A DNA stretch of 63,179 nucleotides, counting the filler, from Hyphochytrium catenoides (taxonomy: Eukaryota; Protista; Hyphochytriomycota), in assembly GCA_900088475.1 (NCBI GenBank). It is 5 parts of 5 records of this genome, joined end to end, with 100 filler letters (N's around TTAATTAATTAA, not from the genome) between each part and the next. Parts side by side here need not be neighbours in the genome. Positions count along the whole stretch, not along the records: positions 1 to 29,190 come from FLMG01004394.1; 4 more parts are not named here. The stretch is one strand, 5' to 3'. A model generated the notes under the pieces. It did no database searches, had not been told where the DNA came from, and saw only the letters and a list, made by a program, of their open reading frames with translations. Made by a program: the position numbers and the translations under genes. Below are positions 1 to 26,514 of the stretch, one piece after another. Position 1 is the stretch's first letter. Each line of letters opens with the position of its first letter.

Positions 1-1
1 T

Positions 2-1735
2 GGAACCCCTCTGTTTAACTTCATCAACTCGCAGGCTCTTCGAGCGTTAGCCAAGCATAACCGCAGGCGAGCTTCGTCAACAGGGCAGCAAGCCGTTATC
101 CTTTCACAAGCGGGAGAGGCGACCAGCAACAACCAGAGACTGGGGATCTTTGAGCTGCACGCGTCGCTCAAGAGCAGACTAATTGATGCGCTTTTGTGCA
201 ACCACACGGNNNNNNNNNNNNNNNNNNNNNNNNNNNNNNNNNNNNNNNNNNNNNNNNATCGCATGGAAGTGCTTGGCATAAACAGCGTCACAGCCCTAAT
301 TTTTCGAGGAGGAGCTTCGACTGATAGCTATGATGACCCTATCACCGAGTGGATCTTTTTCAATGTACGCTTGGGAGCTAGCGACTTTGACAGAGAAGAG
401 ATGCAGTGGCTCATCCGCCGTTTGGTCCCGGTATGGGACAGGATAAAGGCGAGTGCTGTCGTCTGGATATTTCTCTCTATTGCAATGAGGGTGGCCTACT
501 GGATGACAGTCGTGGAAGTGACCAAGAGAAGTGTAATGCACCTCAACTCTGAATGCCCAGCGTTTCTGGAAGAACTATCGGACAGGAGCCCAGAAAAGAA
601 CGCACATAACCATGGAGCTAAGAAAAGGCTCCAGAAGGTTGCTGGAGCAACAACAGGCGCTGGGGCTGTGGGGGCCATGAAGGAGGAGGAGAGCGAGGAG
701 CAAGCCATTAAGGAAGACCAGCCTATGTTGAGAAAGCGCGCAACTTTCAAGGAGTTCCTGACGGCTGCATCGATCGGGATTGCCTGTGCAAACAATGATT
801 GGTTGTACCTAGGAATAGCGGTAGTCAGACAGATTGTCGGTGCGGTATATGGAGAAATATTGACCGCTGGTGCCGTTACCACTACGCTGGCACTGTGGCA
901 AGCCTTTAGCATTGTCATCTACAATCAGGCAATCGTGCGTCTCATCTTCACTGGGCTCGAACAACTATTTAGAAGGAAAGAGGCAGTGCGAGGCATTGCG
1001 GACGTCGGTGTCTTAGGATACATCTCCTTTCTACTCTTTGGCGCAGCAACGCAGACCAACCAACTTCTTGCGTTTGACCTTCTACGTTTCTACACAGTCA
1101 CCAACAGCGCTCTCTCGACCTTTAATTGGCTTGCCTTTCCGACCTGTGGAATTGATGGGCCGTGCATGCATCTGCGCGGTGACACAATAATGCACCTCGT
1201 GGCGTCATTGTATGTCTCTATCATGGTGCTGTTTGTCTCAGGACTTCTTTTTATATGGAGGAGAAGGCGAAGGAACAAGGCCCTTGCATCCATCAACCCC
1301 GCATCGATAAAGGTTCAAAGTTCGCAAGCGCCTTCAGATCCTTCTCATACTTCTCCTTATAATGTGGCGACTGATGAGGATAACACTAGCTGGATCTCCC
1401 TCGGCATAGTAGGCTGTCCACACTGTGGACAGAGTATTATCAAGCAGACCACTCTTACCACCTCCTTGGCTTATAATACCCCTTCCACGTTGAAAAATAT
1501 GAGTGGGGGAGCCAACCCTCAAAGATCGGAGAACAACAAGGAGCAGTTCCAGGGAAAGCAGGCATCCCCACCAACAAAAATCGAAGACACAGATAGTGAT
1601 AAGCCAAGGGATGAAAGGGGCAGTTGTTGTCTTTGGCGGCAATGCCTCCACCGAGTCCCAGAACCAAAGACGCAGACTGGAGACGACGTACATCCTGTGG
1701 TGGTGGTTAGCCGCTATCGTTTCATGACCCTATAA
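2..1735 (+). CDS. Uncharacterised Cys-rich multi-pass membrane protein, family paralogue 1 (5'-truncated by the window edge, internal N gap 210-257)
   Basis: Frame 2 is open from position 2 (GTPLFNFINSQALRALA...RLIDALLCNHT), matching paralogue motifs YIY.G.QAL and LLDLLLCN. Shares FLTAASIGIACANND, DVGVLGY, CGIDGPCMHLRGD, LGIVGCPHCG and terminal RYRF with the other three copies. Confidence 0.85.
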   Translation, partial: GTPLFNFINSQALRALAKHNRRRASSTGQQAVILSQAGEATSNNQRLGIFELHASLKSRLIDALLCNHTXXXXXXXXXXXXXXXXXRMEVLGINSVTALIFRGGASTDSYDDPITEWIFFNVRLGASDFDREEMQWLIRRLVPVWDRIKASAVVWIFLSIAMRVAYWMTVVEVTKRSVMHLNSECPAFLEELSDRSPEKNAHNHGAKKRLQKVAGATTGAGAVGAMKEEESEEQAIKEDQPMLRKRATFKEFLTAASIGIACANNDWLYLGIAVVRQIVGAVYGEILTAGAVTTTLALWQAFSIVIYNQAIVRLIFTGLEQLFRRKEAVRGIADVGVLGYISFLLFGAATQTNQLLAFDLLRFYTVTNSALSTFNWLAFPTCGIDGPCMHLRGDTIMHLVASLYVSIMVLFVSGLLFIWRRRRRNKALASINPASIKVQSSQAPSDPSHTSPYNVATDEDNTSWISLGIVGCPHCGQSIIKQTTLTTSLAYNTPSTLKNMSGGANPQRSENNKEQFQGKQASPPTKIEDTDSDKPRDERGSCCLWRQCLHRVPEPKTQTGDDVHPVVVVSRYRFMTL

Positions 1736-3353
1736 CGATATCCAGCCCTAATGCGCCTATCCTAAGAGCAGAGAAGACAGTAGCAATGACCGGCTTTTCC
1801 TAATTGGCGACTCGCATATTCGTACATTGTATAGAAACATTGTCCTCTTCGATGTCAGTCACTAGCAATCATAAAAATATAAGAGAGCCAAAAGCTGTCA
1901 CAAGCAGCGCAATCTAATTCTTCGTGATGGTCCTACTTTGACGATCCTTCTCCCTCCCGTGGCCAGCAGCAGTTTCTCAGAGGGTAAGGTAGCCACCAGT
2001 AAATAACAGGAGAGATCACGTAGTACACGACACAAGCTACTTCTTCATTCTCAAACTATGAGGTGTTCCGTGGCAGCCAGGGTCTGCTGCTGCTCTCCTC
2101 TCTTCCCGTCGCGGCTGGTTCCTACTACTGCTATATATGCTTTAATAGCTCCAAAGCTCTGTGCCTGGTGCTTCAATATGAGAACTCATGGTCGGGCCTG
2201 CTGCAGAGCGTAGTCACCTTCTTGCAGCGGTTATCACCGCACAGCAGCAGGAGGTCTGCTCTGGTCTGTTCTGCCAGTTGTGTCATCGCCCATCTTCCTG
2301 TCTGTCTGATGAGTGCTGAGAGAGGTCGATGGTTGAATCAGTTCCCCTCTCTCCCTCCTCCCTCCCTCTCCCTCTAAGAGCATGTCGTCCAAATCATCCG
2401 TGTAAGGCCGTTTCATTTTGGAGTGTGAGAACAGCAAAACGGATCATTCAAGCCATTTTCACCCTTCATTTTTCGCGGCCCCGCCATAATTGACAGTGTT
2501 TCCAGCATACGTTTCGCAGGTCAAAGAGCTTGAAAGTTGACTGGACGTGCCTAAATTTGACATTATTCGATAATCTACAAGTCATCATGCTGATCCTCTG
2601 TATGACGCACTTCTTGTCTGGCCGATGCTGGTCCGTCCCCATCATCATCGTGCATCTCTCCTCCCTCATCGCTCCTCCCGCTTCTTTTTTTAAGGCTTCT
2701 TGTTGCCTGGATGCAAGCCCGGCGGGTGATAAAGGATAGATCAACTCCTCCAGGACTGAAGAAGCTGGCAAAGGACCATGGATAGGAGGGAAGGATGTAA
2801 GAGAAAACACCTGCTGACAGAGCTCCGAAGCAGTGTCTTCTTCAGTGCTAGGGATTCTGGGGATAGAGGAAATGAGAGGGAACACGACTTCCCGCCCTTC
2901 ATCCTTCGTAGCGCCAGTCGGCATATGATGGGAGCACAATATGTGTAGAAGGACCTTTATCAGATATGATGAAGCTCCAAACGCCTTTCATGACAAGCGA
3001 AAGCCACGGACGGGGTTTGTCCCTCCTGCTGGGCCCTTCTGTGTACACCAGGATAAAGCAGCGGCAATCTTACTTTGTCGGCAGGTTATTGGAATAGCTT
3101 GAAGAAGCAACATACGTAAGGGGTGGGCCCAATCCTGAGACGCGGACGATAGTTGTTGAGCAAGGCAAAACGTGATGTCTTCGATTATACTCTGCCCCAC
3201 CACCACGGCATAGTAGTGGTGGATGAGGAAGGAGATCTAACCCTCTCTGCGGAGCAAACGGTGTGAGTCGAAGGCGAGAAATTTCATTCTATACTCCTCT
3301 CGTTCCTAGCTCTGTTGCCTCTTAGCTGAGAGAGAAAAGTGAGAGCTAGTAGA

Positions 3354-5564
3354 ATGTCGTCAATCCGGCAAAGTATCAGCTCTCTGTCCGGCGTTGTGCT
3401 TTGCAGAGACTCAATGGATGTTCGAGCAGATACCGCTATTCGGTTGCCTCGCTTCCATTTGCTGGGTCTTCTTTGGACTGTGGTTGAGCTTGCTATCTTC
3501 ATTGTAACACTGGTCAAGACGGATTTCTCGTTTGAATCCTCTGATCTAACGAGCCAGATGCTAAAGTCGGCCATCAACAATGACTTCCATGACGCAAATC
3601 TGACAAAAGAAGCTGCCCAAAGTCTGGGCACTTTAGAAGGTGGCTCGGTACTTGCGATGACGGTGGGCTCCCTTCAGGCAAATTCGGAGCACTGTGGGCC
3701 CGCTGTTGGCTCTCCCTACTTCATCTACACTAGTATACAAGCTCTACTCGCTATCGCCCATACGACGGAATGGAACTGGGATTTCCCAGGGGTCACCAAG
3801 CAAAGTGCCGCTTCTGCCACCAGTCTCTCCTCTCTTGCTGCTGTCGACGTGGATCATCCTTCTATCACCACTATAAACTATAGAGTATTGGATCTTCTTC
3901 TATGCAATCGCACAGAGCCCCTTCTGGACCAAAGATATAGTGTGAGCGGTGTCAGGCAATCATGCAAGGCTCCTGCAGTCCATCTAAACGCGAGTTTGAC
4001 AATAGATCTCTGCAACCACAAAGAAGACTTTGTCTTTCGCCTGCAAGTAGCTGGAGTTAAAAGCACCTGCCTTTTCAGCTTTCAACGCCGAGATCCTCTG
4101 TCTCCTGGCTCATTCGCCTTCTGTATCCGGTTTGGGAGACATGACTTGGATCGCCCAGATATGCAATGGCTTATCCGACGTTTACGGACTGCGTGGAATC
4201 GCATCGTCATATCCGCTTACATATGGATCCTCTCATCGGTTGTCATGAGAATCCTTTATTGGAGAACGCTTGTGAAGGTGACCCAGCGAAGTCTATGGCA
4301 TCTAAGGTACGAGTGCACCGATAAGCCGCGGTGCAATGGTACTCCAATTGTCAAAATGAAGGTATCCAGGGAGAGCAATGCCAGTAAAGTCGTACCTGGT
4401 CCAACATCAGCATCGTCACGCAGCAAGACGAGCTTGAGGAAAGCCACACTCAGCGGCACTTCCTTCCACGATTTCCTTACGGCTGCGTCCATTGGCGTTG
4501 CTTCCGCTAACAACGACTGGTGGTATTTGGGCCTTTCTATCGTCAGACAAGTACTGGGTGCTCCATACGGTGAGCTGATGACCGTCTCTTCAGTTACAGT
4601 TCCACTAGCAGCTTGGCAAGCCTTCGGAATTGTCGTCTATCACCAAGCAGTAATCCAGCTCTTCTTCTTGAGTTGCGGTCAGCTGTTTGACAGGCGTGGG
4701 CCCACTCTCCCTATCATTAGGGATGTCGGAGTGCTCGGCTATACGTCACTGATTTATTTGGCCGTGGTCGTGCAGCTAAATCAACTCTATAATTATGACC
4801 TCGGTTATCTCTGCACAGCTATTACCCGCGTTGTAGCTTCATGCTGGTGGTTGGTCCTACCAGCCTGTGGTCCTGATGAGCCCTGCTTATACATCCGAGG
4901 AGACATTATCGCACACCTATTGGCCGCTATCTATGTCTCAATTGGTGCACTGCTGATCCAAATGTTCGTTCGTGGAAAATTGACGCCCTTCAACCTCCTG
5001 AGAAGGAGATCAAAAATGTCAGTACAGGATGTCGACAAGCGTCCTTCAGAGAAAGAAACGTTTTCAAAGGCTGTTGCCAACAACAAGCCGCTGAGGAGCA
5101 GCAGAAGCAACAAGGGGCACACCTCCTGGAACCCCCTCGGGACTGTCGGATGCCCACATTGCGGCTATTGCCTTGTAGAGCAGACTGCTCTTCTATCGCT
5201 TACCTTAGCAACTTCTTCCTCCTCGATAGCATCCTCTCTTATTACGGATGTCAGTGAGCCCACCGCAAAGAAGCAGGAAGTAACTCATTTCGTTGCCAGT
5301 GAGCAGAACGGCCACATGACGAAGGAAGACGGACCTCCCAGGGACAGCTTCGGAAGCTGCGCCCAGCCACATCGGAACTGTTGTCTAATCTATAGCTGCT
5401 CTCCAAGTAATGACGCATGCTCAGGCGGCAGTATTGCGCTTCCTCGACAAGGGCAGGAGGAAGATAAGAAGACGATGCTATGCTCCCATCGCTTTGTTTC
5501 TCCTGCAATACTAGAAGTTCATACTCAAAGCATAAGGGGAGTTCGCCCAGGGCTGTCATCATGA
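3354..5564 (+). CDS. Uncharacterised Cys-rich multi-pass membrane protein, paralogue 2
   Basis: 741-aa ORF (first ATG at 3354). Motifs PRFHLLGLLW, DFSFESSDLTSQMLKS, LDLLLCNRTEPLLDQRY, HLRYEC, ANND, RGD, GCPHCG are shared with the other paralogues. Confidence 0.9.
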   Translation: MSSIRQSISSLSGVVLCRDSMDVRADTAIRLPRFHLLGLLWTVVELAIFIVTLVKTDFSFESSDLTSQMLKSAINNDFHDANLTKEAAQSLGTLEGGSVLAMTVGSLQANSEHCGPAVGSPYFIYTSIQALLAIAHTTEWNWDFPGVTKQSAASATSLSSLAAVDVDHPSITTINYRVLDLLLCNRTEPLLDQRYSVSGVRQSCKAPAVHLNASLTIDLCNHKEDFVFRLQVAGVKSTCLFSFQRRDPLSPGSFAFCIRFGRHDLDRPDMQWLIRRLRTAWNRIVISAYIWILSSVVMRILYWRTLVKVTQRSLWHLRYECTDKPRCNGTPIVKMKVSRESNASKVVPGPTSASSRSKTSLRKATLSGTSFHDFLTAASIGVASANNDWWYLGLSIVRQVLGAPYGELMTVSSVTVPLAAWQAFGIVVYHQAVIQLFFLSCGQLFDRRGPTLPIIRDVGVLGYTSLIYLAVVVQLNQLYNYDLGYLCTAITRVVASCWWLVLPACGPDEPCLYIRGDIIAHLLAAIYVSIGALLIQMFVRGKLTPFNLLRRRSKMSVQDVDKRPSEKETFSKAVANNKPLRSSRSNKGHTSWNPLGTVGCPHCGYCLVEQTALLSLTLATSSSSIASSLITDVSEPTAKKQEVTHFVASEQNGHMTKEDGPPRDSFGSCAQPHRNCCLIYSCSPSNDACSGGSIALPRQGQEEDKKTMLCSHRFVSPAILEVHTQSIRGVRPGLSS

Positions 5565-5873
5565 CCTGGTTAGGAGTCTGTCCACGTATGAGCCAGTATC
5601 CCAGGAGCAGACCCTAGGATTTTCACCAAAGCAGCGACGGTCTCCTCCTCCTTCCTCTCAGAGATTGCGAGCTTTAAGTGTAACCCCACTATTTCTGCAA
5701 AGAGCTCGCTAGATGCTGTCTATGATGGGAGAAGCGGAGTAATATATTCGACCAATTGATGGGCCTCAGCACCTATGATAGAGCTCGTAATTATTATGAT
5801 GTTAGCTTTAGCGAGCCAGTGCCCCTTTACTCTTTTGGTTATACGACCAATGAAGAAGATAAGCAGTGTGCGC

Positions 5874-7041
5874 CTACGTCTTTCCAGCGCTATTTGTGGC
5901 ACGGCTCGAAGGAGAAGCAGCACTAGGAGAAGTAGGAGCGGAGGCGCCCGGTTGTTTCTCATCATCAGTCGTCTCCATCACGCTGGTCTTGTTCGAGGAT
6001 TGCGCCCGCCGGGTCTGAGCCATCTTCTCTGAGAATTGCTTAGACTCATTTCTCTTTGATTGAGCTCTGCCCTTGAAGTCAACTGCCTTGCTTCCGTCTG
6101 TCGTATTGACGAACGTCTGGATCTTTGTAATCTGACACTCCGTTGCATAACAGTTTCCTATAATTGCTGGGCCAAGCATATGTCTAAGGACGTATCCCAG
6201 AACGTTGCACCAGGCCTTCATCAGACTTATGGTCGACTTTTCTTCCAGTGCAAGGGCTAGGGAGTTAAGGAGTGTCTCGCAGTATACACTGTACATCCAG
6301 GGACGAATGCCGCCCTTCGTGCGATGAACAATGCCCATGTCTAAACAAAGAACCATTAGAGTGTCAGTTGCGGAACAAGCCAGGGTTCAACGACGGAAGC
6401 AGGAGAAGTTGGAAGAAATGGAAGAGCTACGATCGCTGTTCAAGTAGCAGATGCTCTTGGAGTGATTGGCACCAACAAGCACAAAGCCAAGATTAAAGGA
6501 AAAAGGCAGCGATCTTGCGTGACTCACAATAAAGCTTCTTCTTCGCATTTTCCGGGTCAGATACGTCCAAATGCGTCACAAACTCCAACACTGTGACTAG
6601 CACTTCTCCTTGCTTCTTTAGGTCGCCATGGAAAACTTCTGTGAACTGTTGGGAGCGGTCGTAGAGCTGCAAGTAGAAGTTCGTGTAGAGAAAGGCTAGC
6701 CTCGATACATTGTCGTGGTTAGTCATCTTTGTTGTCTTCACTTGGTGCCAGGCCTCTCTGGTAGTGCAGAGAATTCACAAGGTATGATTGTTAGTTGCCC
6801 CGCTTCCAGGGTGCAAGAGAAATACGATACGTAGACCCTACCGACATCGCTGGACCATGTCTGTGGATATTTCTGGATGGATTGGAAATGTAGGTGGATA
6901 ATAGTGCTCCGCAATTTGTTTCTCAGAGTACCGATCTAGAGCATTGTAGGCTCGCAAGGAGGAATCGTCACCATTAGCACCGTCGGCCCCCGCAGGACAG
7001 AAACCTCCACCAGGAGCGCAACCCGGTTGGCATTGCCCCAT
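5874..7041 (-). CDS. Single-domain globin with N-terminal Gly2/Cys motif; exons 7041-6842, 6757-6528, 6340-5874 (298 aa)
   Basis: GT-AG introns join three ORFs in frame (200+230+467=897 nt). Globin landmarks: A-helix W (EAWHQV), B10 Tyr (NFYLQL), CD1 Phe (EVF), E7 Gln (KKQGEVL), proximal F8 His (GIVHRTKGGIRP), H-helix KAWCNVLGYV. Confidence 0.88.
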
Positions 7042-8149
7042 CTTCTATATCCAAATTCTAGTTTTCTAGCTACACGTTGCTACTGCAGAGGCAAAGTGGG
7101 AATGTAATTAGTGTATCGAGGTATCAGCTTGAAGCTATTCTTTTATTTTGCGACTATGAAGTGGTCGCGCTAGCGGTAGGTGACGAGCGTGGTGATCGCC
7201 GCGCTAAATAGACTCTGTGGGGAACTTGTGGGTCCTTATGTATCTGCCCGCACTTGGCAGAGGAGGGGACAAAACATATCGGGAAGCCCGCGAATGAGGG
7301 CCAGAGAGCGGATCCCTTTCTTTCTGTACTCCCTACCTTACGTGCAAGTGGTGCAACACCATATGTGAGACCGACGGAGGTATAGCTCGGACAAAGGAAG
7401 CGTACGAAAAGCCAGACAGACAAAGGAAATAGGGAGGTTGTAGGAACAAAAGCTCGGTCACGACAATAGCACGCTGCGGACAAGACATGACTCCTCTGTA
7501 GAAGCAACACCCATCATCATCTCTAGGCAATGACTAATCAGCAACGGGAGACAGACGATGGTGTGTAAATAGGAGATATAGGACAGCTATCCCTGTGTGT
7601 GCTATCCCTGTCTTTCGAAAGTACATTTGACATTTTGTATAACTCTGGGCCCTGTCAGCTTACAGCGTCAGTGACATCACTCTGTTCCATGCCACGCCAG
7701 TACAGTTCTATGTACAAAGTACCATAGCTTGCTTTATTTTGTTCGCACGTAACGTCTTTTTCCTTGGAGTGACCGGCAAAGCGAAATCGGTCTCTTCCAC
7801 TGTCCACTAGTAGTATGTAGTTTTCTGGAGAAAGTTTCCGTCAGTAGTGCGGTAACATCTTCCGTCATCAGTAGGACAGTAAACCCTGATTATTGAACAA
7901 AGGGAAGAGCACCCGGTGGTTGTGGTCTGTTACCATCATTGAGAACTTTTCCTGAAGGGAAGATGTCAGTCTACGTCCGTTTTTACACTTCGTCGTTATA
8001 TGAATTACACATCCTCATGCCAGTTTCTCTTACTTCCGCGGACCTAAAAGATGCTCCGCAGCCGGTCCATCGATCTAGTAGGGCGTCGGTGATCTGTCAC
8101 CCATGTCACCAGTGAAGCTTATTGCCTTATTTATGAGGGTGGACGGTAC

Positions 8150-9800
8150 TGCAAGGCATTTCCAAGCGTGGAATGATTGTAACAATAATCTATCTCATCG
8201 ATTCGTTTCCAGCAGAATATATGACACAGATGGAGTGGTAATGGTGGATCGAGGCGTCGTTCTATGGAGATGACACACAGAATGATGAGGCTGACCAGGG
8301 CAAAACTGTACTCCAGAGTAGTTGTTGGTAATGCTTACTATTTTAGGGTGGAAAACGTGTGAAGCAGACAACAAGAACACAATTCGGTTCTGCCGCCATA
8401 AATTTCTGTACATTTGGGAGAATCTGAGGTTTGCTGGGTGTTGGCATATCGGAGGGGGAGTGCCAACAGGTTCCTAGTTCCTACTAGGGACTATTACGTC
8501 GTGTGTCCTTCTTTTCGGTATAGCCGTGCCCTCACACCTATCTCCGTGTCTCCTACTACGTCAGACAGTCGGGTAACTTTATTTTCGGAAAGTCCATGAA
8601 GATGTAACTTCGCTGCTAAGACAGGGATGTGCAACACGAGCTTCTACGAGGGAGGGAGCCGTGGTAGTTCTACAAAGAGTTAGTCTTCTTCCGCTGTGAA
8701 GTCTTTCTTTGCTGCTCCTGTGACGGTAGAACGAACCACTTACTAACAGTTTTATAGTGGTGCTTCCCTCAACCTTTGACAACGACCTTGCTTGTGCCTG
8801 TGCGTCGACTCTAACCTGTCCCAGGTGCTCTCTTTCACCTGAGTCATCACTTCAGCAGCGACAGTAATCCCGACAGCAATCCTGACGAGCTTGAGAGAGC
8901 AGTAGCCACACAGACTTCACTCACACCTGTACAGCTAGTGGTGAGGAGGGAGTGGCACAGACGGGAGAACTGGTAGTAGAGGGCGAAGACTTTCCACTTA
9001 GCAGGATAGTCCTTCCACATCGTCACCACCCATCACAGTGACTCATCTCCTTATTCCATATATATGTATACATATTATTAGCTCATCAACGGAACTGACT
9101 ACGCTAAGGTTCAAGCAGCAGACGCCACTTCTCCCTGCGCGCCCGCTTCGCCTCTTTTCAGCCTCAGCTTTGTATTTGAGCCAATAACATTTGGAGAGAG
9201 TCTCCTAGTATTTATTATGGTGTTATAGAAGCACCTCCTAGCTCGTCATTGCGAAGCTGTGAATATGATGAGCTCTACGGGAAAAGGCTTTCTTGAACAC
9301 CGTCAGCCTTTGGCGGTCGTATTAAAAGTGTCAATGTCAACGTTTTCGCCATCATTGCTGAAAGAAACAGCTGAGGTTTGCGGTCATCCTGTCTCAGGGC
9401 CATTGCCAAGGTCAGTCCAAGCAGGCAAAGTTAACCCTAGGTCAACCAAGAGCCACGTAGAAGTTGCTTCTATTATTACGACTAGGGGTTCTGCTTGAGC
9501 AAGGCTAAAGAAGTAGTAGGGATAGACGTCAGATTGGGAGGAGGTACGATGAATGGAGGAGCCAAAGCATTCTGGTACATAGATCAACGTGTGACAAGGG
9601 CCATCTACTAGGGGAACATTTTTTGGAGTCTTCTCCTTGCCCTGCCGTCTTTTTGGGGATAACTTCATGGATTAAACGCTCTTCTCCGAACCCTGAAAAT
9701 GGGTTATGGCGGTGGAGAAGAAATTTCGTTAGTCCTGCTCTCGTTTTCAGGAACTTTGCCACCGCTATTCTTCATCGCGGCTCTTCCTATAATTGGCTCA
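8150..9800 (-). mobile_element. Highly decayed Ty3/Gypsy-like pol remnant
   Basis: Scattered minus-strand fragments in PR-RT-RH-IN order: PIIGRAAM, LIHEVIP..SRWPL, EKWRLLLE, YIFMDFPKIKLP, PKIVSITNNYSGVQF, YCYNHSTLG. Many stops and frameshifts; no LTRs identified. Confidence 0.4.
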
Positions 9801-10268
9801 TCACTCTTTTATCACTCGCCTGGGCCAGCAGAGGTGCTCGCTAAGCTTGCTTAGATGGTGGCCCCACTTTGGAAATGCATCAATCGCCTTCTAGGAGTGA
9901 TGATATATTGATTCACTAGGCAGCGCGAATATCCAAGATGCAACAGGAACTTGGCAACGCTTCTTCTTTATCATGAACTATTATTGCAATTGTGCTTGGA
10001 TCGTTGGCTAATCCAGGGCAAGTGTAGACCTTTTCTTTCCTAGACTAAGTGGCACGAGCTCTAACATAAGAACATTGTCTCTAGCAGTCATACTTCAAGA
10101 TGCAAGAGGAACTGACCGAACTCTCTCCTTTACCGCCGTAAAGCGCTATACATGGCACTCACAATAGTTCAGCCAGGGCAGATTTAGATCCTCTCTCGAC
10201 TGAGGTGAATCGCAAAGGCTCTACTGAAGGAAAACTGTTCACTTGGCGGGTATTTAGTGAGAAAGCCC

Positions 10269-12569
10269 TTAAGTGTGCACCGGCATAAACCGGTAGCCAT
10301 TCCAGATCTGCGGTGTGCGCTGATTCTGCTCTCCCGCCTGCTTAGAGGGCCTACTACTGTCGACAGGAGCATTTGTTTTGGCGTCACACCACTTTGTGCT
10401 TTCAATCACTCGACGTTGGCTGTCACTCTTCTGCGACGCACTGCCCCCGTGTATAGTCTCTTCTTCACGGCATTGACTCTCTGCTCCGCCTTGAATCGTT
10501 GCTCCGCCAACCAGCACATTGTTTAAGGTTGAACTTTCCCGGACTATCCAGTTGCCACATTGAGGGCATCCCACTCTGCCAAGGTAATGAAGCCAATCTC
10601 TCGTCCCGCTGCTGCTACTCTTTGACACTGTTTCTTTATCATCAGTGGCCTCTTTTGTAGGGATTGCCGCTGGAACATGGATCCTACTTTGGCCTGTGGT
10701 CCCGCTGGCCGGGATCACTATCTTAGAAGGGCCAGTCTTGTTCCGCTTCTTCTTCCAGAAGTAGATTGAGCTCTGCAAGGAGAGACAAAGAAGTGACGTG
10801 TAGATTGGTCCAATCGTGTGCACGACAACGTCACCTCGGAGGTACATACAAGGTCCAATATCTACGCCGCAGCCAGGCAACACCAGCCACCAGAAGGAGC
10901 TAACCACCCAGTTACTTAGGCGGAAGAAAAATAGGAAGTCAATATTGAGTAGCTGGACGGACTGAACCGCAGTTCCAAGCACTAACATTGAGATGTATCC
11001 AAGAACTCCGACGTCCACTATTCCAGTGAGTCTTCTCCTGCCGAGCCATGTACTTGCCAGGCGATCCAAGGCGTGATAGATCACCTGGAGTGCGGCCTCA
11101 TGGTAAACTACCATTCCCAGGGCTTGCCAAGCAGCTAGGGGCATTGTCACCGCTGAAGCAGTCAGGATTTCTGAATAGATGGCGCCCAACACTTGTCTCA
11201 CCACGGCCAAACCAAAATACCAAGGATCATTGTTGGCCACAGCTACACCAATGGAAGCTGCAGCAAGTAGGTCCTGCAGGTTATCTAGACCTCCTGGACT
11301 CTTGGCGTTTGCTCTCTTTGCGCCAGAAGAGACTTCTCTTCCAGCGGAAGGTACGGCCTTCTTTGGCGCTCTGGAGTGACTGAGATTGCCCAGTAGTCCA
11401 CTTGCCCTCCACCACCCTGCCTTCTTCTTGGGTGACTTGGATGTAGAAGTTGACCCGTCTCGGTAGTCTCGTTTTTGGGCCTTCAGCTTTCGGTTGCATT
11501 CGCCCCTGAGATGCGCTAGGCTGCTCTTAGTGACCTCTATGGCAGTACGGAAGTATGCTATTCTCATAGCGATGGAAAGGAGTATCCAACAAAGGCCAGA
11601 CGCCCGGATGCGGTTCCAAATAACCTCCAGGCGCTGAAGTATCCACCGCAAATCGTCACGTCTCATGTCCGTATCGCTAAAGTGAATACATGGGAAGGAC
11701 CATCCTTTCAAAGGATCCGGCCTTGTGATGGCCCATATGCACACACTCTTGACTCCAGCCACCTCGAGCCTGAAGTAGTACTTCTCTCGCTGATGGCACA
11801 TGGCCATAATGTCAGTAAGGTTTGTAAATACAGCCGAGCCCTTACAAGGATGAGATATGTGGCTCACAATATACCTCTGATCAAAAAGCAGTTCGCCGTG
11901 CCTGTTACAGAGAAGGAGATCCAGTAGTTGGTTCGTGAGAAAGCTGCCGGTCTCTTCCAATGAGCTATTTTTTAGGTCTAGATGAACGGGTGCCCCTCTT
12001 CTTGCCAAGTCTTGCTCGATCTTGTTCGTTCTCGCCATCACCGCATTCAGAGCCTGGAAGCCTGCATAGATGTAATACTGGCCGCCCGGCACAGCACCGC
12101 AGTAGTCCGAGCCATCATCCTTGATGAACCCCCACGCCATAGTGACAATGGACATTTCTTTAAGAGCGGATGGAGAGATGCCTGTTGACTGCTCATTTAA
12201 CACATTCGAGCTTGACTTGAGCATCTGCGTAGTCATATCCATGGACTCAAAAGAGTAGTCTAAGCTTGCAAGCGTGACAAGGAAGATTGCCAACTCAATA
12301 AAGATCCATAGTGTGCCCAGAAAGTGGAATCTGGGCATTGAGAAGACTATCTTTTGGCGCACATGGAGATGGTCTCTCTCAAACAGAAGTCTTTTCCAAG
12401 AAGGCTCCGTGTTGATGGCCATGACCATGCTGGTGGGTATCGGCTGTGCAGAATAGTCTCCCAAAGCCCCTCCTCTGTTGAGAGACGGTGCCTCATCATC
12501 CTCTTCACTTTGATAAGGTCTGCAACTTTTATCTCCAACTTTGATTGACTTTTGCTTAGCGCTGCTCAT
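10269..12569 (-). CDS. Uncharacterised Cys-rich multi-pass membrane protein, paralogue 3 (766 aa)
   Basis: ATG-initiated ORF with PRFHFLGTLW, DYSFESMDMTTQMLKS, DYCGAVPG, FDQRY, HLRGEC, ANND, DVGVLGY, RGD, GCPQCG and terminal GYRF. Confidence 0.9.
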   Translation of the reverse strand: MSSAKQKSIKVGDKSCRPYQSEEDDEAPSLNRGGALGDYSAQPIPTSMVMAINTEPSWKRLLFERDHLHVRQKIVFSMPRFHFLGTLWIFIELAIFLVTLASLDYSFESMDMTTQMLKSSSNVLNEQSTGISPSALKEMSIVTMAWGFIKDDGSDYCGAVPGGQYYIYAGFQALNAVMARTNKIEQDLARRGAPVHLDLKNSSLEETGSFLTNQLLDLLLCNRHGELLFDQRYIVSHISHPCKGSAVFTNLTDIMAMCHQREKYYFRLEVAGVKSVCIWAITRPDPLKGWSFPCIHFSDTDMRRDDLRWILQRLEVIWNRIRASGLCWILLSIAMRIAYFRTAIEVTKSSLAHLRGECNRKLKAQKRDYRDGSTSTSKSPKKKAGWWRASGLLGNLSHSRAPKKAVPSAGREVSSGAKRANAKSPGGLDNLQDLLAAASIGVAVANNDPWYFGLAVVRQVLGAIYSEILTASAVTMPLAAWQALGMVVYHEAALQVIYHALDRLASTWLGRRRLTGIVDVGVLGYISMLVLGTAVQSVQLLNIDFLFFFRLSNWVVSSFWWLVLPGCGVDIGPCMYLRGDVVVHTIGPIYTSLLCLSLQSSIYFWKKKRNKTGPSKIVIPASGTTGQSRIHVPAAIPTKEATDDKETVSKSSSSGTRDWLHYLGRVGCPQCGNWIVRESSTLNNVLVGGATIQGGAESQCREEETIHGGSASQKSDSQRRVIESTKWCDAKTNAPVDSSRPSKQAGEQNQRTPQIWNGYRFMPVHT

Positions 12570-14892
12570 CTTATCTATGTCTGAGCGCTCGCCGTTAAAC
12601 TGAAGTGATAGGTTGACACTGCCTCCTGTCCACGCTGGCGGTGTCTAGGTTTTCGTGGAGGTCTTCCAGCAGCAGGGCGTCAAGCGGTAGGGCACTCTCA
12701 TGGTCCTTAGAGGCAAAATTCCAGCCATGATGAGGTGATTGATGAGGCCCTGATAAGTAGTCTTCCCGTGAGCTCTTCCTTTTCAGCATATACTTGCGGC
12801 CCAGCCAAGGTATACCTATCTATCTCATTCATCCAAACCTCCGCTGGCCCTAGTACCCGTCGATGCAGCACCTATGAAGAAGGTGGCCACCACTAAAGAA
12901 CGGTCGTGGTATCCACCTCCCTTCCACTCTGCAGCGGATGCCTTCTAGCGGATGCCTTCACTCTGCAGCGGATGTTCTCGACGAGCTCCTCATCCTCCCT
13001 TGAGTGCAGGAGTTCCTATGTTGAGTCAATCACTCTTCTAATCGAGGATCCGAGATCGCATCGAGCAGCTTGCGAGGATGGGGCAACAACTGGCGACAGA
13101 CAGAGAAACTTATCGCCATCGGAGCAACGCTGCGCTATAGTTTGTTTGTCCGCGCTATTGTACTTTCTAGTGCTTTGTTCCTGTCTCTTGAGATTCAGTG
13201 CGGGCGGTGGTAACAGGACAACAGACATGTAACGGCGAGCGGCACAGGGTGGATGGGCACTCGGGCATCAGACCGGATTGGAAAGCCTTAACACATTGTG
13301 AATTCCTGTCGAGGGCTGGGTGGGTTTACAGTGTAGATAACCTGAGCTCTAAAGGAAGATGAGGATTGGACTGAGTGCTCGGTTTATGAAAACAATTGGT
13401 TGATCATCATCACAAGGGCGGCATTGCTGTTGTTGGCAGCGTCTCAGGCCTCCTGCTGGTCCTGGCTCCTGCTGTCGGGGAGATGGCGGCAGGAACGAGG
13501 GCTGGCTTGTCATCTTGGTCTCCAGGCGTCAGTAGCCAGTTGCCAAATCTCAGCATAATGCTGCTATTCTTCCATCCAGATAGCGACCAGGTAGTAGTAT
13601 CGACAGCGTCAAAACCGATAGCAGGAAGCGAAGAACCTGCCTGCTGCTGTTAATTATAGCTTGAGAGGACAGCAGCAAGCACTAACAGCCTGCTGGTGTG
13701 CGCAGCTACTGTAGATGCTGCGATGCCAAGAAGATAATCGTCGGTCACCTGTGCTTCGAGGCCCAACTGTGTCAACCCTTACTACCCTATTTGTATATGA
13801 TCTCTTACGGTCGCTATAGTCCACCGGAGCTTGCTCTTCTTCATCACTACCACCACACCCGGAGAGTGTGCGAGAGTAGTGTGCGCTGTTAAGAGCCCTT
13901 TCCTTCTAGAGTCTCCATAGCAAGCAATATTCCTCTTCTTTATCTCTTGTTCCCACGCTCTTCTTGGCCTATTTCTTGGAATTTTGTCCTTGCTTCCATG
14001 ACCTTTTTCTCTTTCTTCCGCCTCTTTACTTCATCCCCTTTCTTCTACTAGCCATCAGTTTATTGGCGTTTCTCTTGTCCTCTGAGACGATAGATCTCTT
14101 GGTGACCATTCAAGGGTTCTATATCACTTCTGTTCTACTCTTACGTAGAGTGTTTTTCTATCTCCTTTCTCTCTGCATCATATCAACCTCATCGCTTTTC
14201 ATGCTTAGGATTTATAGTACGTAAGGTTCAGTAGTCTATCAAGCTCTTCTCTTTGAGCTCATAATCTTCATTCATCTCATTCTGCTGTTTGCACTACGAT
14301 CGAGAAGGCCTCTCAAATGCTTTGCCATCTCATCATGCGACAGCGGTTGATGTGCCAACAAGGAATCTGCCAAATTTCAATTGCCTTGGCTTTGTACGCC
14401 CGTCATCAGTTGAAGTCGCTAGCACGCGAGAGCAGGAGAGTCTAAGGCACACAAACACAGCATGGGAGGCTGCTACCAACGCAGACTACCAGCAAGTCCA
14501 TTGACCCCAATCTAACACCATCCATCGTTAACCAATTGGATTATTCTGATCTCACTCGGGAGAACTGGACTGACAGCCAAGTATTATCCGGGGATAGATT
14601 GTCTGCTGGACGGCCGTTGGCTAAATGTAGGAAAAAGTTTCACTCATCTAGCACTCACTTCTCATAAAGGCAAGCAAAAGGTTGACCTTATGCAATAGGC
14701 GCAGAATGGATTGGCTGAATAAGAAAGAGCAGGGTTGAGGCTAAGAAGTATGGGCGCAACTCTCTCGCTGCTACCATTATATATGGACACTGCGTGGCGT
14801 TTGAAGCGAATGGACTCAAAACTGGAGTGCGCCGGTAACAATAGCATCTGGAGGAGGAACTTATAGCGTAGCGGTTATTACTAGGGTGTGTC

Positions 14893-15285
14893 GGCTGGGT
14901 CAAGCGAAGGGAGGCTCTTGGCCCAGGCGCATTATTTTAAGTTATAGCCGTGTCCTAACTCACTCACTAACGAAAAACAACTAAGCGTTAAGTACGCACT
15001 CCTTACCACCTCACCTACATAAATAAATACCTACTATCATCTACCTCTAGCATTGGTCCAAGAAAGCCGCATCGATGGCCGCTCGGTTGACTGTTCTGCG
15101 GCAGTGCATAGCTCTAGTCACCGTTGCTTCTTCTATCCGTTGCCGCTGTGTCTAGATTTGAGCAGGCGGCAGAGGCTGAGGCTGACCGAGGAAATCTGAA
15201 AGTGACGTAGGAGGTCAGCCCCATCCTACACCCGCGCCAGGAAAACCTAATATCTCTCCCTGAATATTCCACCGTCCCTAACAAT
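14893..15285 (+). repeat. Dispersed ~400-bp repeat family A, copy 1 (possible solo LTR or non-autonomous TE)
   Basis: Blocks ggctgggtcaagcg..ttggcccaggcgcat, ggcggcagaggctga and gaggtcagccccatc recur at 20268-20675 (+) and 23095-23449 (-). Confidence 0.7.
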
Positions 15286-17276
15286 CACCAACTATAGAAA
15301 TGATCTCAAACATACCTACACCCCTGCTTCTCTAGTTGCATCCGCTTGTCGACCAACAGTAGAGGAAGGAAGCAATGGAGGTTGATATATCAAAGAAACC
15401 ATTGAACGACAAGGGGGCGCAACCAAAACCATCTTGACATACAAGAGGATGTACAAAAACCTTCGGACAGATCTGTGTGACCACCTGGGACCTGTGGCCA
15501 CTCGCCCATTTGACGCAGTACTTGGCCTACGGCGGAGAGTCTTGCTTAATGCTTCTCTAGTCTGATTATATTCCTTGAAGCTTGTAGCTCTAAGATCAAG
15601 AGATATCCCCTGGTGGCACCGACACAGCTCGCCGCTGCGCCAATGAATCGCACCTTCTCATCTTCTATTCGTGCGATGTCCGTTTCCTTATGCTGTGAGT
15701 CACACTCTGATACACATAGGATACGAACCGAGGAGAGAAGATGGCGACAGCATAATAGATCCTCTCTCTTCTCTTTCCCGTCTTTCCCTACGATAGTATC
15801 GCATCATGGCTTTTCGAGATCTTTATTTCTTCATCACTCTGTTTCCATGAAGCTACCATCTTATACTATTGTCCCGCTACTCCTCCCCATCCTCCTCCGC
15901 TTCCCTCTCGTGTCATCGTCTTCTCTGATCATCGCTCTCGCCGTCCTACTATTATGGATAGTAGTGAGTCCTCTTCTTCTTTCATCTGCTCTGCTACTTC
16001 CCACTTCTGTGTCCACTCGACCCTTTAGCCCTTCTGCCTTTCTCCTCCTCTAGAAGCTTTATTTTCCTCCGCCGTCTACAAGTGGTCCTTTGCTCTTCCT
16101 GCGTCCACTTTCCTTGCTCGTCTTAGGCTAGCTGATGACGTCTTGTTGTCTAGTAGTACCGGTCTCCGTTCTTCTCTTCTTCAATCTTTGGTTTTCTTCA
16201 GGTCAAGTGGTCGTGGTGGGGGATAGCTGCTGCTTTTGTTGCGAGCTTGATGGTGATGAGCTTTTGACAGCTCTGAAGTTCTTAGTGGTCATCAATGAGA
16301 GTGATGGTAGGAGGAGCTGCCGCCTTTAGCTATAAAAAGAGAGACAGAGCCCCTCTTGCGTTTTCGCTTGTTATTAACAGCGGTCAGTCACTCCAACAGT
16401 GCGGCGGGTGGCCGTTACTGGCATGACAGGCTGGCCGTTACTAGAGTGCTATTTTGGTGGCTCAGCTCCCAACCTCAGCCCATCATCAGCAGGATCCACC
16501 CCTTCCCTTCCCTTCTGCATAGCCTCATAGTTATGCCCAGCCGCTTTCCTTCTACACAGAGAGAGGGACGGCCCTGCGACTAGCTCCTAGTAGTGGCCTG
16601 TCGTGCTGATACGCTTTCCTCCTTCTTTCATTACAGATTCCCTTCCCTGCTATATTGTAAATTCTTGTCGTGCAACCTTCGGATCTCTTCGGTACTGGCC
16701 CGATGCTGTCTACCACTCGTGGCGAGATATGCCTCTGCTAAGCTGCCCATTTGTCCCTTAAGCTCAGCTGCAAGTGTCCTCAAGTGGACGGCTCTATGTG
16801 CAGGGCTCTATGCGCACGGCGTGCGTGAGGATGCCTTCTCCCGACCTGGTCGGGCATGTCATCGGATGCGAAGGAGATAAATGAAATGACCTATGCCGAC
16901 TAGCTAGACCCAATCGGCCTTTTCTTCGATGGCACTGAGCCGTGATTCTAGCGCCGCTTCTCTGTCCTTTGTACGGAACGTTGCCGCACTCCTTCGTCAA
17001 GGTCATCCTCTTCTTGTTTACACTACAGCGTCTTTATAGGTGGCGTAAAGCAAGATTCACTGACGTATGTCGGCATGACACAAACTGCATAAAAGCGACT
17101 GCGAAGTCAAGGACCACGAGACGGTGGACAACCTTCCCTTACCGTCTTAAACGCGCGGTTCAGGCTAGGCAATGGCTCTCCCAAAGAGAGGCGATCAACC
17201 GTTGGGTCCCTCCTCAGCTTAGACGAAGCTTCTCAGTGACAAGAAGGAGTTTGCCAAAGTTAATTCATGGTCTAGA

Positions 17277-19394
17277 ATGGGAGACATGTCAGGCCAGGAA
17301 GCAAAGAAGAGTTCGCAAGCGCATGGGTTCATTTCCCATCGCCTCTCATCCTGCTGGAAAAATGTTATTCTCCACCGCAGGGACGTCCATATAACGCCTG
17401 GCCAATTGTCGCTACCGCGGTTCCACCTTTTCGGTGCTTTATGGATTGGACTGGAGCTCCTTATCTTCATTATTACACTGACGCAGATGGACTACTCCTT
17501 TGAATCGATGGATATGACCACGCAGATGCTGAAGTCACGCTCAGACCAACAAGCACTTCTTCAAAATCAAGAGCAAGAGCTCCGAGAAAGTGGAAAAAAG
17601 CTGGAAGACATGTCATTTGTCACGATGGCGTGGGGCTCGGTTCGAGACCCATCAGACTATTGCGGAGCCATACCAGGTTCTCAGTACTACATATACGCAG
17701 GATCACAGGCACTTCGGGCTGTCCTGGCCTCCTCTAGCAGTGATCATGACCACCGCAGCCTGAGCGAGAGCATAGTTTGGCCAATTACTCGGCAAGCAAA
17801 TCGAAGACAACCTAGCGCTGAGACTAAGGGTGCAAATAGCATTACTTCTTCACCAGCTTACGTAGATGGAGAGGAAGAGGCTTTCACGAGCAAGCTTCTA
17901 GATTTGCTTCTCTGCCTGCGAATGGATGAACCACTTTTCGACCAGAGGTATATTGTCAGCAATAGCATTCATCCTTGCAAGGGGCCCGGAGTCTTTCTAA
18001 ACCTTACCGCTGTTTTGGGGCTCTGCAAGAGCAAAAAGGACTTTCACGTGAGACTGGAAGTTGCAGGCGTCAGAAGTCTATGCATCTTCGGCATATCAAA
18101 GACGGATCCATTGAGCAGCTGGTCAGTTCCGTGTATAAGGTTCGGGACAAAAGATATGGAAAGTCCCGATCTTTTGTGGATTCTCCCTGAGCTTGAAGGA
18201 TTGTGGAACCGGATAAAACTTTCTGCTTGGTCTTGGATTCTTCTCTCCATTTTGATGAGAACGGTGTACTGTTGGACAGCAGTACAGGTCACGCGGAAAA
18301 GCTTGACTCATCTGAGAACCGAATGCCAAGCTTATTGTGTACGTCCATCCAAGAGTAACTCATTTCAACTGGCTAAAACAGCAGAAGAGTCAGTGCTGTC
18401 ATCTGTAGGGGAGTCAGAATTCGAAGAATCGAGACAAGCAGACCCGTGTGCTATATTTGGCATCTCGAGTGTCGATCTACGAAGGTTTTTAACAGCTGCT
18501 TCGCTCGGTGTGGCTTGCGCAAACAACGACGCTTGGTATCTGGGACTAGCGGTGCTTAGACAGATCCTCGGCGCAATATACGGCGAAATATTGACAGGCT
18601 CGGCGGTGACAACACCATTGGCCGCTTGGCAAGCCCTTGGCATGGTCGCATATCATGAAGCAGTCATCAAGCTTGTGCAGTATGGACTAACTACTTACAG
18701 AATCACCGGCAGGAATAGAGCACCATTATCTGCAATTACCGATGTGGGCATCTTAGGTTACATGTCGATGTTACTATTGGCAACGACAGTGCAGCTGATC
18801 CAGCTATTTGATATTGACCTCTTCTACTTCTTCCGCTTGGTCAACGCCATCATCGCGGTCAGTTGGTGGCTCATCTTTCCTGCTTGCGATGTTGATGGGC
18901 CTTGTCTCTATATGCGAGGAGACATCATGATACACACACTTGCAGCTGTGTATACCTCCATCTTCGTGATAGCTTTATTCGCCGCAAAGAGGGCTTGGAG
19001 GGGCCGATTGTGGAGCCATGCATTTCACCCCGACGTGATCTTTTCCTGGCACCACTACTTGGGAATTATTGGATGTCCACACTGCGGCTGCGCGCTGCTC
19101 CGGGCGAGCGCGGTACTAGAGAATTCTGCTATAAAGAAGAAGGAAGAAATTTTCCTCTCTTGCAAGGACCAAGTCTATCTCGGGTCTGCAGCGGATAGTG
19201 AAGTCAAAACCACTTCTGCAGGAATAAAAGGACGTCCATTACGGAAGGAGATAGGTATCTATGAAGAGGAAACAAGCATAAAGACGTCGAAAGTAGTAGC
19301 GCACCGCCTGCCTCCTCTTCCACGACGAGAGGTCAGGAGGTATAGCTTCCTGCCAATGAAGGAGATAGAGACATTCTTCGGCTACCCCGGCTAA
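17277..19394 (+). CDS. Uncharacterised Cys-rich multi-pass membrane protein, paralogue 4 (705 aa)
   Basis: ATG-initiated ORF with PRFHLFGALW, DYSFESMDMTTQMLKS, DYCGAIPG, EPLFDQRY, HLRTEC, ANND, DVGILGY, CDVDGPCLYMRGD, GCPHCG and RYSF. Confidence 0.9.
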   Translation: MGDMSGQEAKKSSQAHGFISHRLSSCWKNVILHRRDVHITPGQLSLPRFHLFGALWIGLELLIFIITLTQMDYSFESMDMTTQMLKSRSDQQALLQNQEQELRESGKKLEDMSFVTMAWGSVRDPSDYCGAIPGSQYYIYAGSQALRAVLASSSSDHDHRSLSESIVWPITRQANRRQPSAETKGANSITSSPAYVDGEEEAFTSKLLDLLLCLRMDEPLFDQRYIVSNSIHPCKGPGVFLNLTAVLGLCKSKKDFHVRLEVAGVRSLCIFGISKTDPLSSWSVPCIRFGTKDMESPDLLWILPELEGLWNRIKLSAWSWILLSILMRTVYCWTAVQVTRKSLTHLRTECQAYCVRPSKSNSFQLAKTAEESVLSSVGESEFEESRQADPCAIFGISSVDLRRFLTAASLGVACANNDAWYLGLAVLRQILGAIYGEILTGSAVTTPLAAWQALGMVAYHEAVIKLVQYGLTTYRITGRNRAPLSAITDVGILGYMSMLLLATTVQLIQLFDIDLFYFFRLVNAIIAVSWWLIFPACDVDGPCLYMRGDIMIHTLAAVYTSIFVIALFAAKRAWRGRLWSHAFHPDVIFSWHHYLGIIGCPHCGCALLRASAVLENSAIKKKEEIFLSCKDQVYLGSAADSEVKTTSAGIKGRPLRKEIGIYEEETSIKTSKVVAHRLPPLPRREVRRYSFLPMKEIETFFGYPG

Positions 19395-20267: not shown

Positions 20268-20675
20268 GGCTGGATCAAGCGGAAAAAGGCTATTGGCCCA
20301 GGCGCATAATTAATAACACTCGTGTCCTAGCCCATTCAGTAAAGAAGAACTAGGGCGTTCGGTAAAGAACATACTCCTTTCGAGCACGGGTAACGGGCAC
20401 TCTCACCTGTCTACCGGGTTATATAGTTAAGCACCTCTGGTCCAGCTTGAGGAGAAATCAGGGAAAGGATGGGCAGGCTCCGTGTTGACTCTTCTTCAGT
20501 ACTGCATAGGTGTAATTAGCTGTGCCTCCGTATCCGTGGCTTCTGTGTTCTCCGTTCTGAGCCGGCGGCAGAGGCTGAGACTGACTGAAGCAATTCTGAG
20601 AGTGGGCGAGGTCAGCTCCATTCTCTTACCGTGCGAGGGGAAAATAATTATGCCCCCCGATCTACCGTGCTAATG
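20268..20675 (+). repeat. Dispersed repeat family A, copy 2
   Basis: Colinear similarity to 14893-15285 (ttggcccaggcgcat, cgtgtccta, ggcggcagaggctgag, gaggtcagc). Confidence 0.7.
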
Positions 20676-22606: not shown

Positions 22607-23094
22607 AAGCTTATGGAAAGGCCGTCATCATGGATGGCTGTTAAGGCAGGTGATTACCCTTTCGCATTCTCTGCTGTATTTCTCCTTTTCCTCCTTGACT
22701 CACTTTGGCGCATCCCATCTCGATCCCCTCTTTTCAGTCTTTCTCTCCCTCTTTCTCCCTTCTTGTTGGTCTTCAAATTTTGCCAACAATAAGTCACTGC
22801 TCCCGGTTCCCTTTTGAATTCTCTGTCCTCTTGCTAACCCACCTGTCCGTCTCCTCCTCCTCCTCCTCTTCTCTCTGTGTCTCTCTGTGTCTCTCTCTCT
22901 TTCTCTCTATTCCTCTCTCTCTTTTTCTCTCTCTCTTTTTTTCTCTCTCTCTCTTTTTCTCTCTCTCTCTCTCTTTCTCTCTCTTCTCTGTCTCTGTCTC
23001 TCTCTCTTTCTCTCTCTTTTCTCTCTATATTCTCTCTCTATTCTCTCTCTTCGCTCTCTCTATACATATGTATTGTATTCCTCGGTTAAATATC

Positions 23095-23449
23095 GGGGAA
23101 GGAAGGTGGGAGGAAGTAGGTGTTCCTGACGCGGTTAGATGATGGGGCTGACCTCGCGCCTCAGTCTCAGCTTTGGTCGGTCAGCCTCTGCCGCCTGCCC
23201 ACACTTAGACACAGCGGCAACGGATAGGGGAGGTACAGCAGACTGCACCTATTCGGCGCATCAGGAACAGTCAACCGCGCGCCCGCCCTTTCTTCGCTGC
23301 GCTAAACCTATGGTAGAGGAGAGAGTACGTAGTTAATGTGTAGCCTGGGCGGTAAGGGTTAGTTAGCTTACTACTTGTGAGTTAGTCGTAGAGTTAGGAC
23401 ACGACGGCGATTACGAACGGGCCAAGAGCCTCCTTCGGCTTGACCCAGC
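23095..23449 (-). repeat. Dispersed repeat family A, copy 3 (inverted)
   Basis: Reverse complement contains ctatccgttgccgctgtgtcta, ggcggcagaggctga, gaggtcagccccatc and gctgggtcaagc..gaggctcttggccc as in copy 1. Confidence 0.7.
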
Positions 23450-24690: not shown

Positions 24691-25018
24691 GCTCTTGGTA
24701 TTCTTTTGATGGGTTATAGAGTCATGGCCATATTGGGCAAGGACATCACCACTTTCAACTATCACCGCTTATCCTGCTCCGAGCTTGTTTCCGTCAACCA
24801 CTGTAGTCGTTGCCTCAATTCTGAAGCTTCCAGTTTCTTCCACACACTGTCAGGTCGGCGCCGTCCTTGGCCTTGGTATCGCTGCCGCCTTTTGCGTAAA
24901 GAAAGTTCAGTGGAGCCTTATGGGTAAAATCGTTGTTGCCTGGCTCTTCACTGTTTCTGCCGCTGCACTCGTCTCAGGTGTGCTATCTTGGCTTGTCCAG
25001 TTTGCCTTTAGGACTTAG
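24691..25018 (+). pseudogene. C-terminal fragment of a PHO4/PiT-family phosphate transporter, frameshifted
   Basis: ALGILLMGYRVMAILGKDIT, then a frameshift near 24790 to TTVVVASILKLPVSSTHCQVGAVLGLG...VQWSLMGKIVVAWLFTV, the PiT C-terminal signature (PVSSTH). No upstream part is present. Confidence 0.8.

Positions 25019-26471: not shown

Positions 26472-26514
<43 letters not shown>

Follow-up and report, generated by a model that had tools for sequence, protein, structure and literature searches.

The first part of a stretch of DNA from Hyphochytrium catenoides (assembly GCA_900088475.1) harbors four long paralogous open frames, C0 to C3, and raises the question of whether these are genes, to which family they belong and what their products might do. 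The whole stretch, here called the window, is 63,179 nucleotides long and consists of five parts joined by filler letters; the piece analyzed covers window positions 1-29190 (FLMG01004394.1), and residue numbering throughout follows C2. Sequence comparison indicates that C0-C3 are very probably real, intron-free coding genes of an orphan family, which arose by old local duplications and have been kept by purifying selection.

The four frames are 705-791 codons long, compared to 173 codons for the longest frame elsewhere in the window. When the window was shuffled 200 times, the longest open frame was 175 codons on average and 286 at most, demonstrating that the four frames are not due to chance. 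Between the copies, tblastn E-values ranged from 1e-72 to 1e-155, and in alignments C3 was 46-47%, C1 38-39% and C0 34-36% identical to C2. The original prediction, made from the sequence alone, had described four open reading frames (ORFs), three on the plus and one on the minus strand, that share ordered motif blocks, and these were all present in the translations and alignments: PRFHxxGxLW, D(Y/F)SFESxDxTxQMLKS, CGxxxGxxYxIY, LLC, DQRY, WxRI and HLxxEC, followed by AAS(I/L)G(V/I)AxANND, RQxxGAxYxE, DVG(V/I)LGY, PxC..D.xPCxxxRGDxxxH, LGxxGCPxCG and a terminal Y/H-x-F. The copies align colinearly from a start of the form SW..L..R...HV/PRFH to the Y-x-F located a few codons before each stop. 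Since the alignment spans from the block preceding the first transmembrane segment (TM1) to the Y-x-F near the stop, the frames were taken as complete single-exon coding sequences (the 5' end of C0 lies beyond the edge of the piece, Table 1). An A at position -3 is found in all three complete starts, and no common upstream motif exceeding shuffles was detected at the five family starts. The GTG start at 3339 that the ORF tool assigned to C1 (frame 3339-5564) is an artefact of the bacterial code. When each copy was used in tblastn, and a family hidden Markov model (HMM) was run with filters off against all six-frame open stretches of at least 25 codons, exactly four family copies and no decayed fifth copy were found in the window. 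Scans for tRNAs, Rfam families and tandem repeats yielded nothing relevant.

Coding constraint was analyzed per domain and is given as pN and pS rather than as omega, because dS is saturated for most pairs. Synonymous sites between the paralogues are saturated (pS 0.72-0.81), while replacement differences remain far lower (pN 0.29-0.47) in the ectodomain, the second transmembrane segment (TM2) and the membrane core. This bears out the prediction of old duplication followed by purifying selection. In the full-length copies, pN of the TM1-TM2 segment was 0.31-0.42 versus 0.29-0.37 in the membrane core, and near-saturated values were confined to the TM2-TM3 linker (0.59-0.74) and the tail (0.52-0.59). 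The idea of diversified ectodomains therefore fails: conservation of the ectodomain roughly equals that of the core, and the divergent parts are for the most part predicted to lie in the cytosol. The linkers had also been called unalignable, which is correct for the TM2-TM3 linker and applies likewise to the N terminus, one insertion-prone stretch of the ectodomain and the C-terminal tail.

To follow the same genes within the organism, Logan contigs of three of its DNA runs were compared over window 1-5900, and 40 of 128 single-nucleotide polymorphisms (SNPs) and 12 of 22 indels between the runs were listed. All three listed indels inside frames (711, 3736, 5421) are of +/-3 letters, which likewise points to coding constraint; among the nine listed in the C0-C1 spacer, three are multiples of three and six are of 1 or 2 letters. 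Eight of the 15 coding SNPs among those listed are synonymous and seven nonsynonymous, with replacement sites being about 3.3 times as numerous as silent sites. Mismatch of the contigs to the window is about 0.5% in the coding parts versus 3-5% in spacer 2400-3412, where many 1-2-letter indels occur in addition. Within this spacer, runs X1 and X3, which derive from one sample, carry different variants, suggesting heterozygosity or a mixed population.

The frame of C0 contains an N gap, which could be bridged with these contigs. A Logan contig of DNA run X1 (2379 letters) covers positions 1-209 with its letters 312-520 and positions 258-1996 with its letters 647-2379, so that the true interval at the gap (210-257) amounts to 126 letters (42 codons), compared to 48 N in the window. 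Because 48 and 126 are both multiples of three, the frame relation of C0 as drawn in the window is true, and both sides of the gap are continuous and in frame. The stretch from LLCNHT to RMEV comprises 43 codons, including two split edge codons, and its counterpart in C1 and C2 comprises 41-42. Past position 209, the loose end of an X3 contig reads in frame G-P-I-I-D-Q-R-F-I-I, where the family form of the block is (E/G)(P/L)L(L/F)DQRY; C0 therefore has the DQR(Y/F) block too.

To which family do these genes belong? When 1.84 billion cluster representatives were searched exhaustively with a HMMER profile, the only match was P0001 (764 aa, E 3.8e-193), an unannotated singleton cluster from the Logan assembly of run SRR28521206. 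It shares 35% identity with C2 and has all blocks, the six ectodomain cysteines, the CPxC and a terminal YRFM; it differs from the window copies in having a shorter DYSFES block (DFEALD) and no G behind CPxC. Its contig (L001, 7.2 kb, 50.4% G+C) carries a family pair on the same strand, at 2985-5279 and 6601-7230. The second copy lies about 1.3 kb downstream of P0001, is truncated by the contig end and is 58% identical to P0001 over 137 residues. Counting both tandem arrays, the family comprises at least six members.

No other relative was detected. Neither Pfam nor NCBIfam gave a match at E<=10 for any member, which for Pfam agrees with the original prediction (five members scanned), and a profile search of PDB sequences was negative. 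Scans of 2.9 million viral contigs and of prokaryotic genome contigs were equally negative. Metagenome contigs contained none by profile-derived patterns, and a tblastn screen revealed none among the 120 metagenome matches listed for the pattern I-x-DVG(V/I)LGY. Word-indexed protein searches with whole C2, the family alignment or the core (E<=10) were blank as well, but they carry little weight, because they also missed P0001, which is part of the same collection, even with P0001 itself among the aligned query sequences. A rhizosphere metagenome and a soil metagenome (runs X4 and X5; 2024) each contain about 5% of the sampled C2 words, so that soil is the probable habitat of the organism or of a close relative; over window 1-5900, X4 gave no contig matching at 90% likeness. 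Thus, these searches returned only P0001, with its tandem neighbor, and no full-length match to a characterized family, and the supposed lineage-specificity is reflected in a very narrow distribution, with one match in 1.84 billion representatives. Given this one outside match and the coding constraint (pN << pS, in-frame indels), the family is a restricted one and, as judged from these searches, is undescribed at the protein-family level.

The history of the cluster was followed in a maximum-likelihood tree of the five long members (C0-C3 and P0001). C2 pairs with C3 (support 98/97) and C0 with C1 (86/87), and all terminal branches are long (0.75-1.27 changes per site). As neighbors are sister pairs in the tree, the cluster expanded locally through old duplications, one of which was inverted. 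P0001 is not the orthologue of any single window copy. The L001 pair, at 58% identity, is much closer than any pair in the window; duplication in the family has therefore continued in at least one genome.

Each gene is predicted to encode a glycoprotein-like integral membrane protein of 700-770 aa. The protein layout was deduced from hydropathy, from counts of K+R versus D+E in the loops and from conserved residues (Table 1). It probably comprises a cytosolic N terminus, TM1, an outer domain of about 220 residues, TM2, a cytosolic linker, the membrane core and a cytosolic tail. Six cysteines are conserved in the predicted outer domain (157, 221, 242, 258, 277 and 294), and each full-length copy has 1-3 N-x-S/T sequons there. 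In C0 other residues stand in place of both C277 and C294, a joint loss that a disulphide pair would be expected to show. In the core, helices are suggested by hydropathy around residues 436-457, 468-491, 517-539, 545-565 and 581-602, and invariant polar residues are frequent (N446, N447, D448, R458, Q459, E467, Q482, D519, Q536, Q539, D544, D570, R578, G579, D580 and H584, with G579 included as part of the RGD block); D570 lies in an acidic loop and is flanked by the invariant C567 and C574. Basic loops are the linker, the 492-516 loop and the start of the tail, whereas the ectodomain, the 540-548 loop and the Cys-bracketed 566-580 loop are acidic. These charges fit best if 545-565 does not cross the membrane, which would result in six passes with both ends inside.

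The tail contains an invariant CPxC (C668, C671). A zinc ribbon would call for two CPxCG-like knuckles that together supply four zinc ligands; besides the CPxC, a second cysteine group, CC..C.H, occurs only in C0, C1 and P0001. These three extra tail cysteines come on top of 11 cysteine columns that are kept in every copy covering them. The family is Cys-rich, as originally described, only to a modest degree. Five residues from its end C2 carries YRFM, which has the form of a tyrosine-based YxxPhi sorting signal; YSFL is found in C3 and HRFV in C1, where 27 further residues follow.

Table 1. Positions of the four genes, of the predicted protein segments of C2 and of other features in the analyzed piece.
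Feature	Window position	Strand	C2 residues	Remarks
C0	2-1735	+		5' end missing, piece edge falls inside ectodomain; contains N gap 210-257
C1	3354-5564	+		complete, single exon, 736 aa counted from first ATG
C2	10269-12569	-		complete, single exon, 766 aa; reference copy
C3	17277-19394	+		complete, single exon, 705 aa; nearest kin C2
N terminus			1-82	variable, net basic
TM1 (predicted)	12261-12323	-	83-103	after PRFHxxGxLW; strongest hydrophobic peak in each full-length copy
Outer (luminal/extracellular) domain (predicted)	11607-12260	-	104-321	net acidic, six conserved cysteines
TM2 (predicted)	11535-11606	-	322-345	WILLSIxMR, then invariant HLxxEC
Linker	11280-11534	-	346-430	after EVTxxSLxHLxxEC; polar-rich, mostly basic, unalignable, predicted cytosolic and disordered
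Core	10764-11279	-	431-602	most conserved part; four to five predicted membrane helices
Tail	10272-10763	-	603-766	basic beside membrane, then variable
CPxC	10554-10568	-	668-671	window position includes the following G
YRFM	10284-10295	-	759-762	
PiT/PHO4 remnant	24691-25015	+		profile positions 256-350 of 350, E 4.7e-17; separate from the family
CT dinucleotide array	22866-23061			about 101 units; gene-poor right third
CT dinucleotide array	26466-26545			about 40 units; gene-poor right third
91-nt unit, repeated twice	22432-22606			gene-poor right third
Inverted repeat pair	15108-15256 / 23110-23252			about 150 nt, 77-79% complementarity
Direct repeat pair	14893-14936 / 20268-20311			44 nt, 84%
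Direct repeat pair	28009-28070 / 28200-28261			62 nt, 84%

The layout invites comparison with two families of membrane proteins. The group II TRP channels comprise polycystin-2/PKD2L and mucolipin TRPML (Pfam PF08016, PF20519 and PF21381). Like these, the family members have cytosolic ends and a disulphide-bearing, glycosylatable domain of about 220 residues between the first and second helices (here predicted), and ahead of the last helix come a hydrophobic segment and an acidic loop, which would take the places of pore helix and filter. A simple reading of hydropathy and loop charge is compatible with six membrane helices, of which the first two would enclose a large domain and the last two a re-entrant pore loop. 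Unlike these channels, however, the family has an 85-residue TM2-TM3 linker, predicted to be disordered, and is most strongly conserved in TM3-TM4 and not in the pore region. In hmmscan of five members none of PKD_channel (PF08016), Polycystin_dom (PF20519) and MCLN_ECD (PF21381) was found at E<=10. Membership in the TRP channels is thus not supported, and the resemblance is one of layout only. In the SLC44/CTL proteins (PF04515) the membrane helices number ten, and the Pfam domain at the C terminus is well conserved. They share with the family a length of about 700 residues and, by prediction for the family, cytosolic ends and a large Cys-containing, glycosylated TM1-TM2 loop, but six to seven helices are predicted here instead of ten, and PF04515 gave no match at E<=10.

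DC-STAMP and Meckelin (PF07782, PF09773) were not found at E<=10 either, and scored 0.58-0.60 in the ESM Atlas feature search. In this search shuffled proteins reach 0.8 one third of the time, and all scores obtained here are lower. The top clusters were unnamed transmembrane proteins of Oomycota (710-790 aa) with a sub-chance score of 0.73. Oomycota clusters (562-790 aa) are of similar length and were the nearest by features for the whole protein as well as for TM1-ectodomain-TM2; they share 121-137 of 256 features, with no alignment or E-value, and no such protein was returned by HMMER. Arterivirus envelope glycoprotein clusters (0.71-0.72, core) and Mucolipin ECD/Polycystin_dom (0.56-0.59) were likewise sub-chance. 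A kinship with PiT/PHO4 transporters was considered because of the ANND motif and a PHO4 remnant nearby, and was rejected: there was no PF01384 match at E<=10, and G(V/I)AxANND differs from the GANDVAN signature.

What might the products do? The original prediction left the choice between a receptor and a channel. Because many invariant polar and charged residues lie inside the predicted core helices, we tentatively prefer a channel or transporter, a role that is possible rather than probable. In this model the outer domain would be held by up to three disulphides between TM1 and TM2. The core would consist of TM3, TM4, TM5, the hydrophobic stretch 545-565, the outer acidic loop C567..D570..C574 and then the last helix; the chain would thus cross the membrane six times, with a re-entrant-like loop ahead of the final crossing. 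The core would conduct or bind ions or small solutes, the outer domain could serve in gating or recognition, and the tail, with its CPxC(G) knuckle and C-terminal YxxPhi-type signal, may direct trafficking. Taken as a whole, the account that combines orphan genes, this layout and a channel or transporter function is slightly favored as the best explanation. A bolder version is improbable: the family could represent a new class of ion channel, restricted to one lineage of soil eukaryotes, with six passes, a Cys-bracketed acidic re-entrant loop and a disulphide-stabilized gating domain between TM1 and TM2, which would be either independent of TRP/polycystin or diverged from it beyond recognition.

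Several points weigh against this account. Conservation peaks in TM3-TM4 and not in the putative pore loop, unlike in the usual tetrameric P-loop channels, and the 85-residue TM2-TM3 linker has no counterpart in such channels. AlphaFold2 models from the five-member alignment are unusable (pLDDT 33 for the full length, the ectodomain included, and 46 for residues 298-612; pTM 0.22-0.24), and a Foldseek search of the PDB with the pLDDT-46 model gave nothing at E<=0.001, with TM-scores of at most 0.18, i.e. noise; the predicted helix count and re-entrant loop thus come from simple hydropathy and charge only. Moreover, the label 'orphan' may partly reflect database coverage if the lineage is poorly sampled.

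The proteins could instead be surface receptors, sensors or adhesion proteins, in which the outer domain binds a ligand or partner, the core anchors or signals, and linker and tail recruit cytosolic partners. The conserved 220-residue outer domain with its disulphide-type cysteines and sequons, the long predicted disordered cytosolic segments, the YxxPhi-like endocytic signal and a tandem expansion typical of recognition families would all fit. However, it is the membrane core with its many invariant polar residues, rather than the outer domain, that is best conserved, Pfam revealed no known signalling domain, and replacement in the outer domain is not accelerated (pN 0.31-0.47, about core level), which argues against diversifying recognition; we regard such a role as unlikely. 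Still less probable is that the genes are very divergent members of a known family, be it polycystin/mucolipin-type TRP channels, SLC44 or the unnamed oomycete transmembrane proteins. The large Cys-containing TM1-TM2 loop, the predicted cytosolic location of both ends and the Atlas leads (Oomycota at 0.73, Mucolipin ECD/Polycystin_dom at 0.56-0.59) point in this direction, but every Atlas score lies below the 0.8 level of shuffled proteins, and the Pfam models (E<=10, five members), the HMMER search and the PDB sequences were all negative.

Two further explanations concern the origin of the frames. Intron-free genes in several copies, short dispersed repeats in the window and the arterivirus envelope clusters among the Atlas core matches (0.71-0.72) might be expected of envelope-like or viroporin-like cargo of a mobile element or virus that was multiplied with its carrier. 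Yet 76 open frames of at least 70 aa yielded no domain of a reverse transcriptase, integrase, transposase or capsid, the copies lack flanking terminal repeats and share no common flanking DNA, G+C is even, the 2.9 million viral contigs contained no relative, and the Atlas scores are sub-chance. With no element gene or border found, transposable element (TE) or virus cargo was rejected and is considered very improbable. It is harder still to believe that the frames are non-functional, i.e. dead copies left open by luck or an assembly artefact. Although the databases searched contain no annotated protein of the source genome, the four frames exceed 700 codons where shuffles reached at most 286, replacement is far below saturation while silent sites are saturated, three independent DNA runs contain the same sequences, in which all of the listed indels keep the frame, and a fifth and a sixth member exist in another sample.

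G+C of the piece is even (46-52%). The original prediction had placed the genes amid decayed TEs, but in the 76 open frames of at least 70 aa outside the genes Pfam revealed no transposon domain; the sole find was a phosphate-transporter remnant (PiT/PHO4, Table 1). A frameshift near 24790 splits this remnant into two frames, and no upstream part is present in open frames of at least 70 aa. The remnant may represent the final exon of an intron-rich gene, with the frameshift being a sequencing error, or else a piece of a pseudogene. Two CT dinucleotide arrays and a repeated 91-nt unit lie in the right third of the piece, which is gene-poor. One inverted and two direct pairs of short dispersed repeats were also observed, which may be fragments of small non-autonomous elements; no family gene is flanked by any of them.

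Among eukaryotes that have been poorly sampled, orphan families in tandem are common, and the novelty here consists in no test having shown family membership; no new mechanism has been demonstrated. A multi-pass protein of about 700 residues with a conserved polar-lined core and no relative detected beyond the P0001 locus is nevertheless uncommon. If its members are channels, transporters or receptors, databases would gain a protein family that they do not yet describe, and possibly a new fold, and the family would then mark lineage-specific membrane biology of a soil eukaryote.

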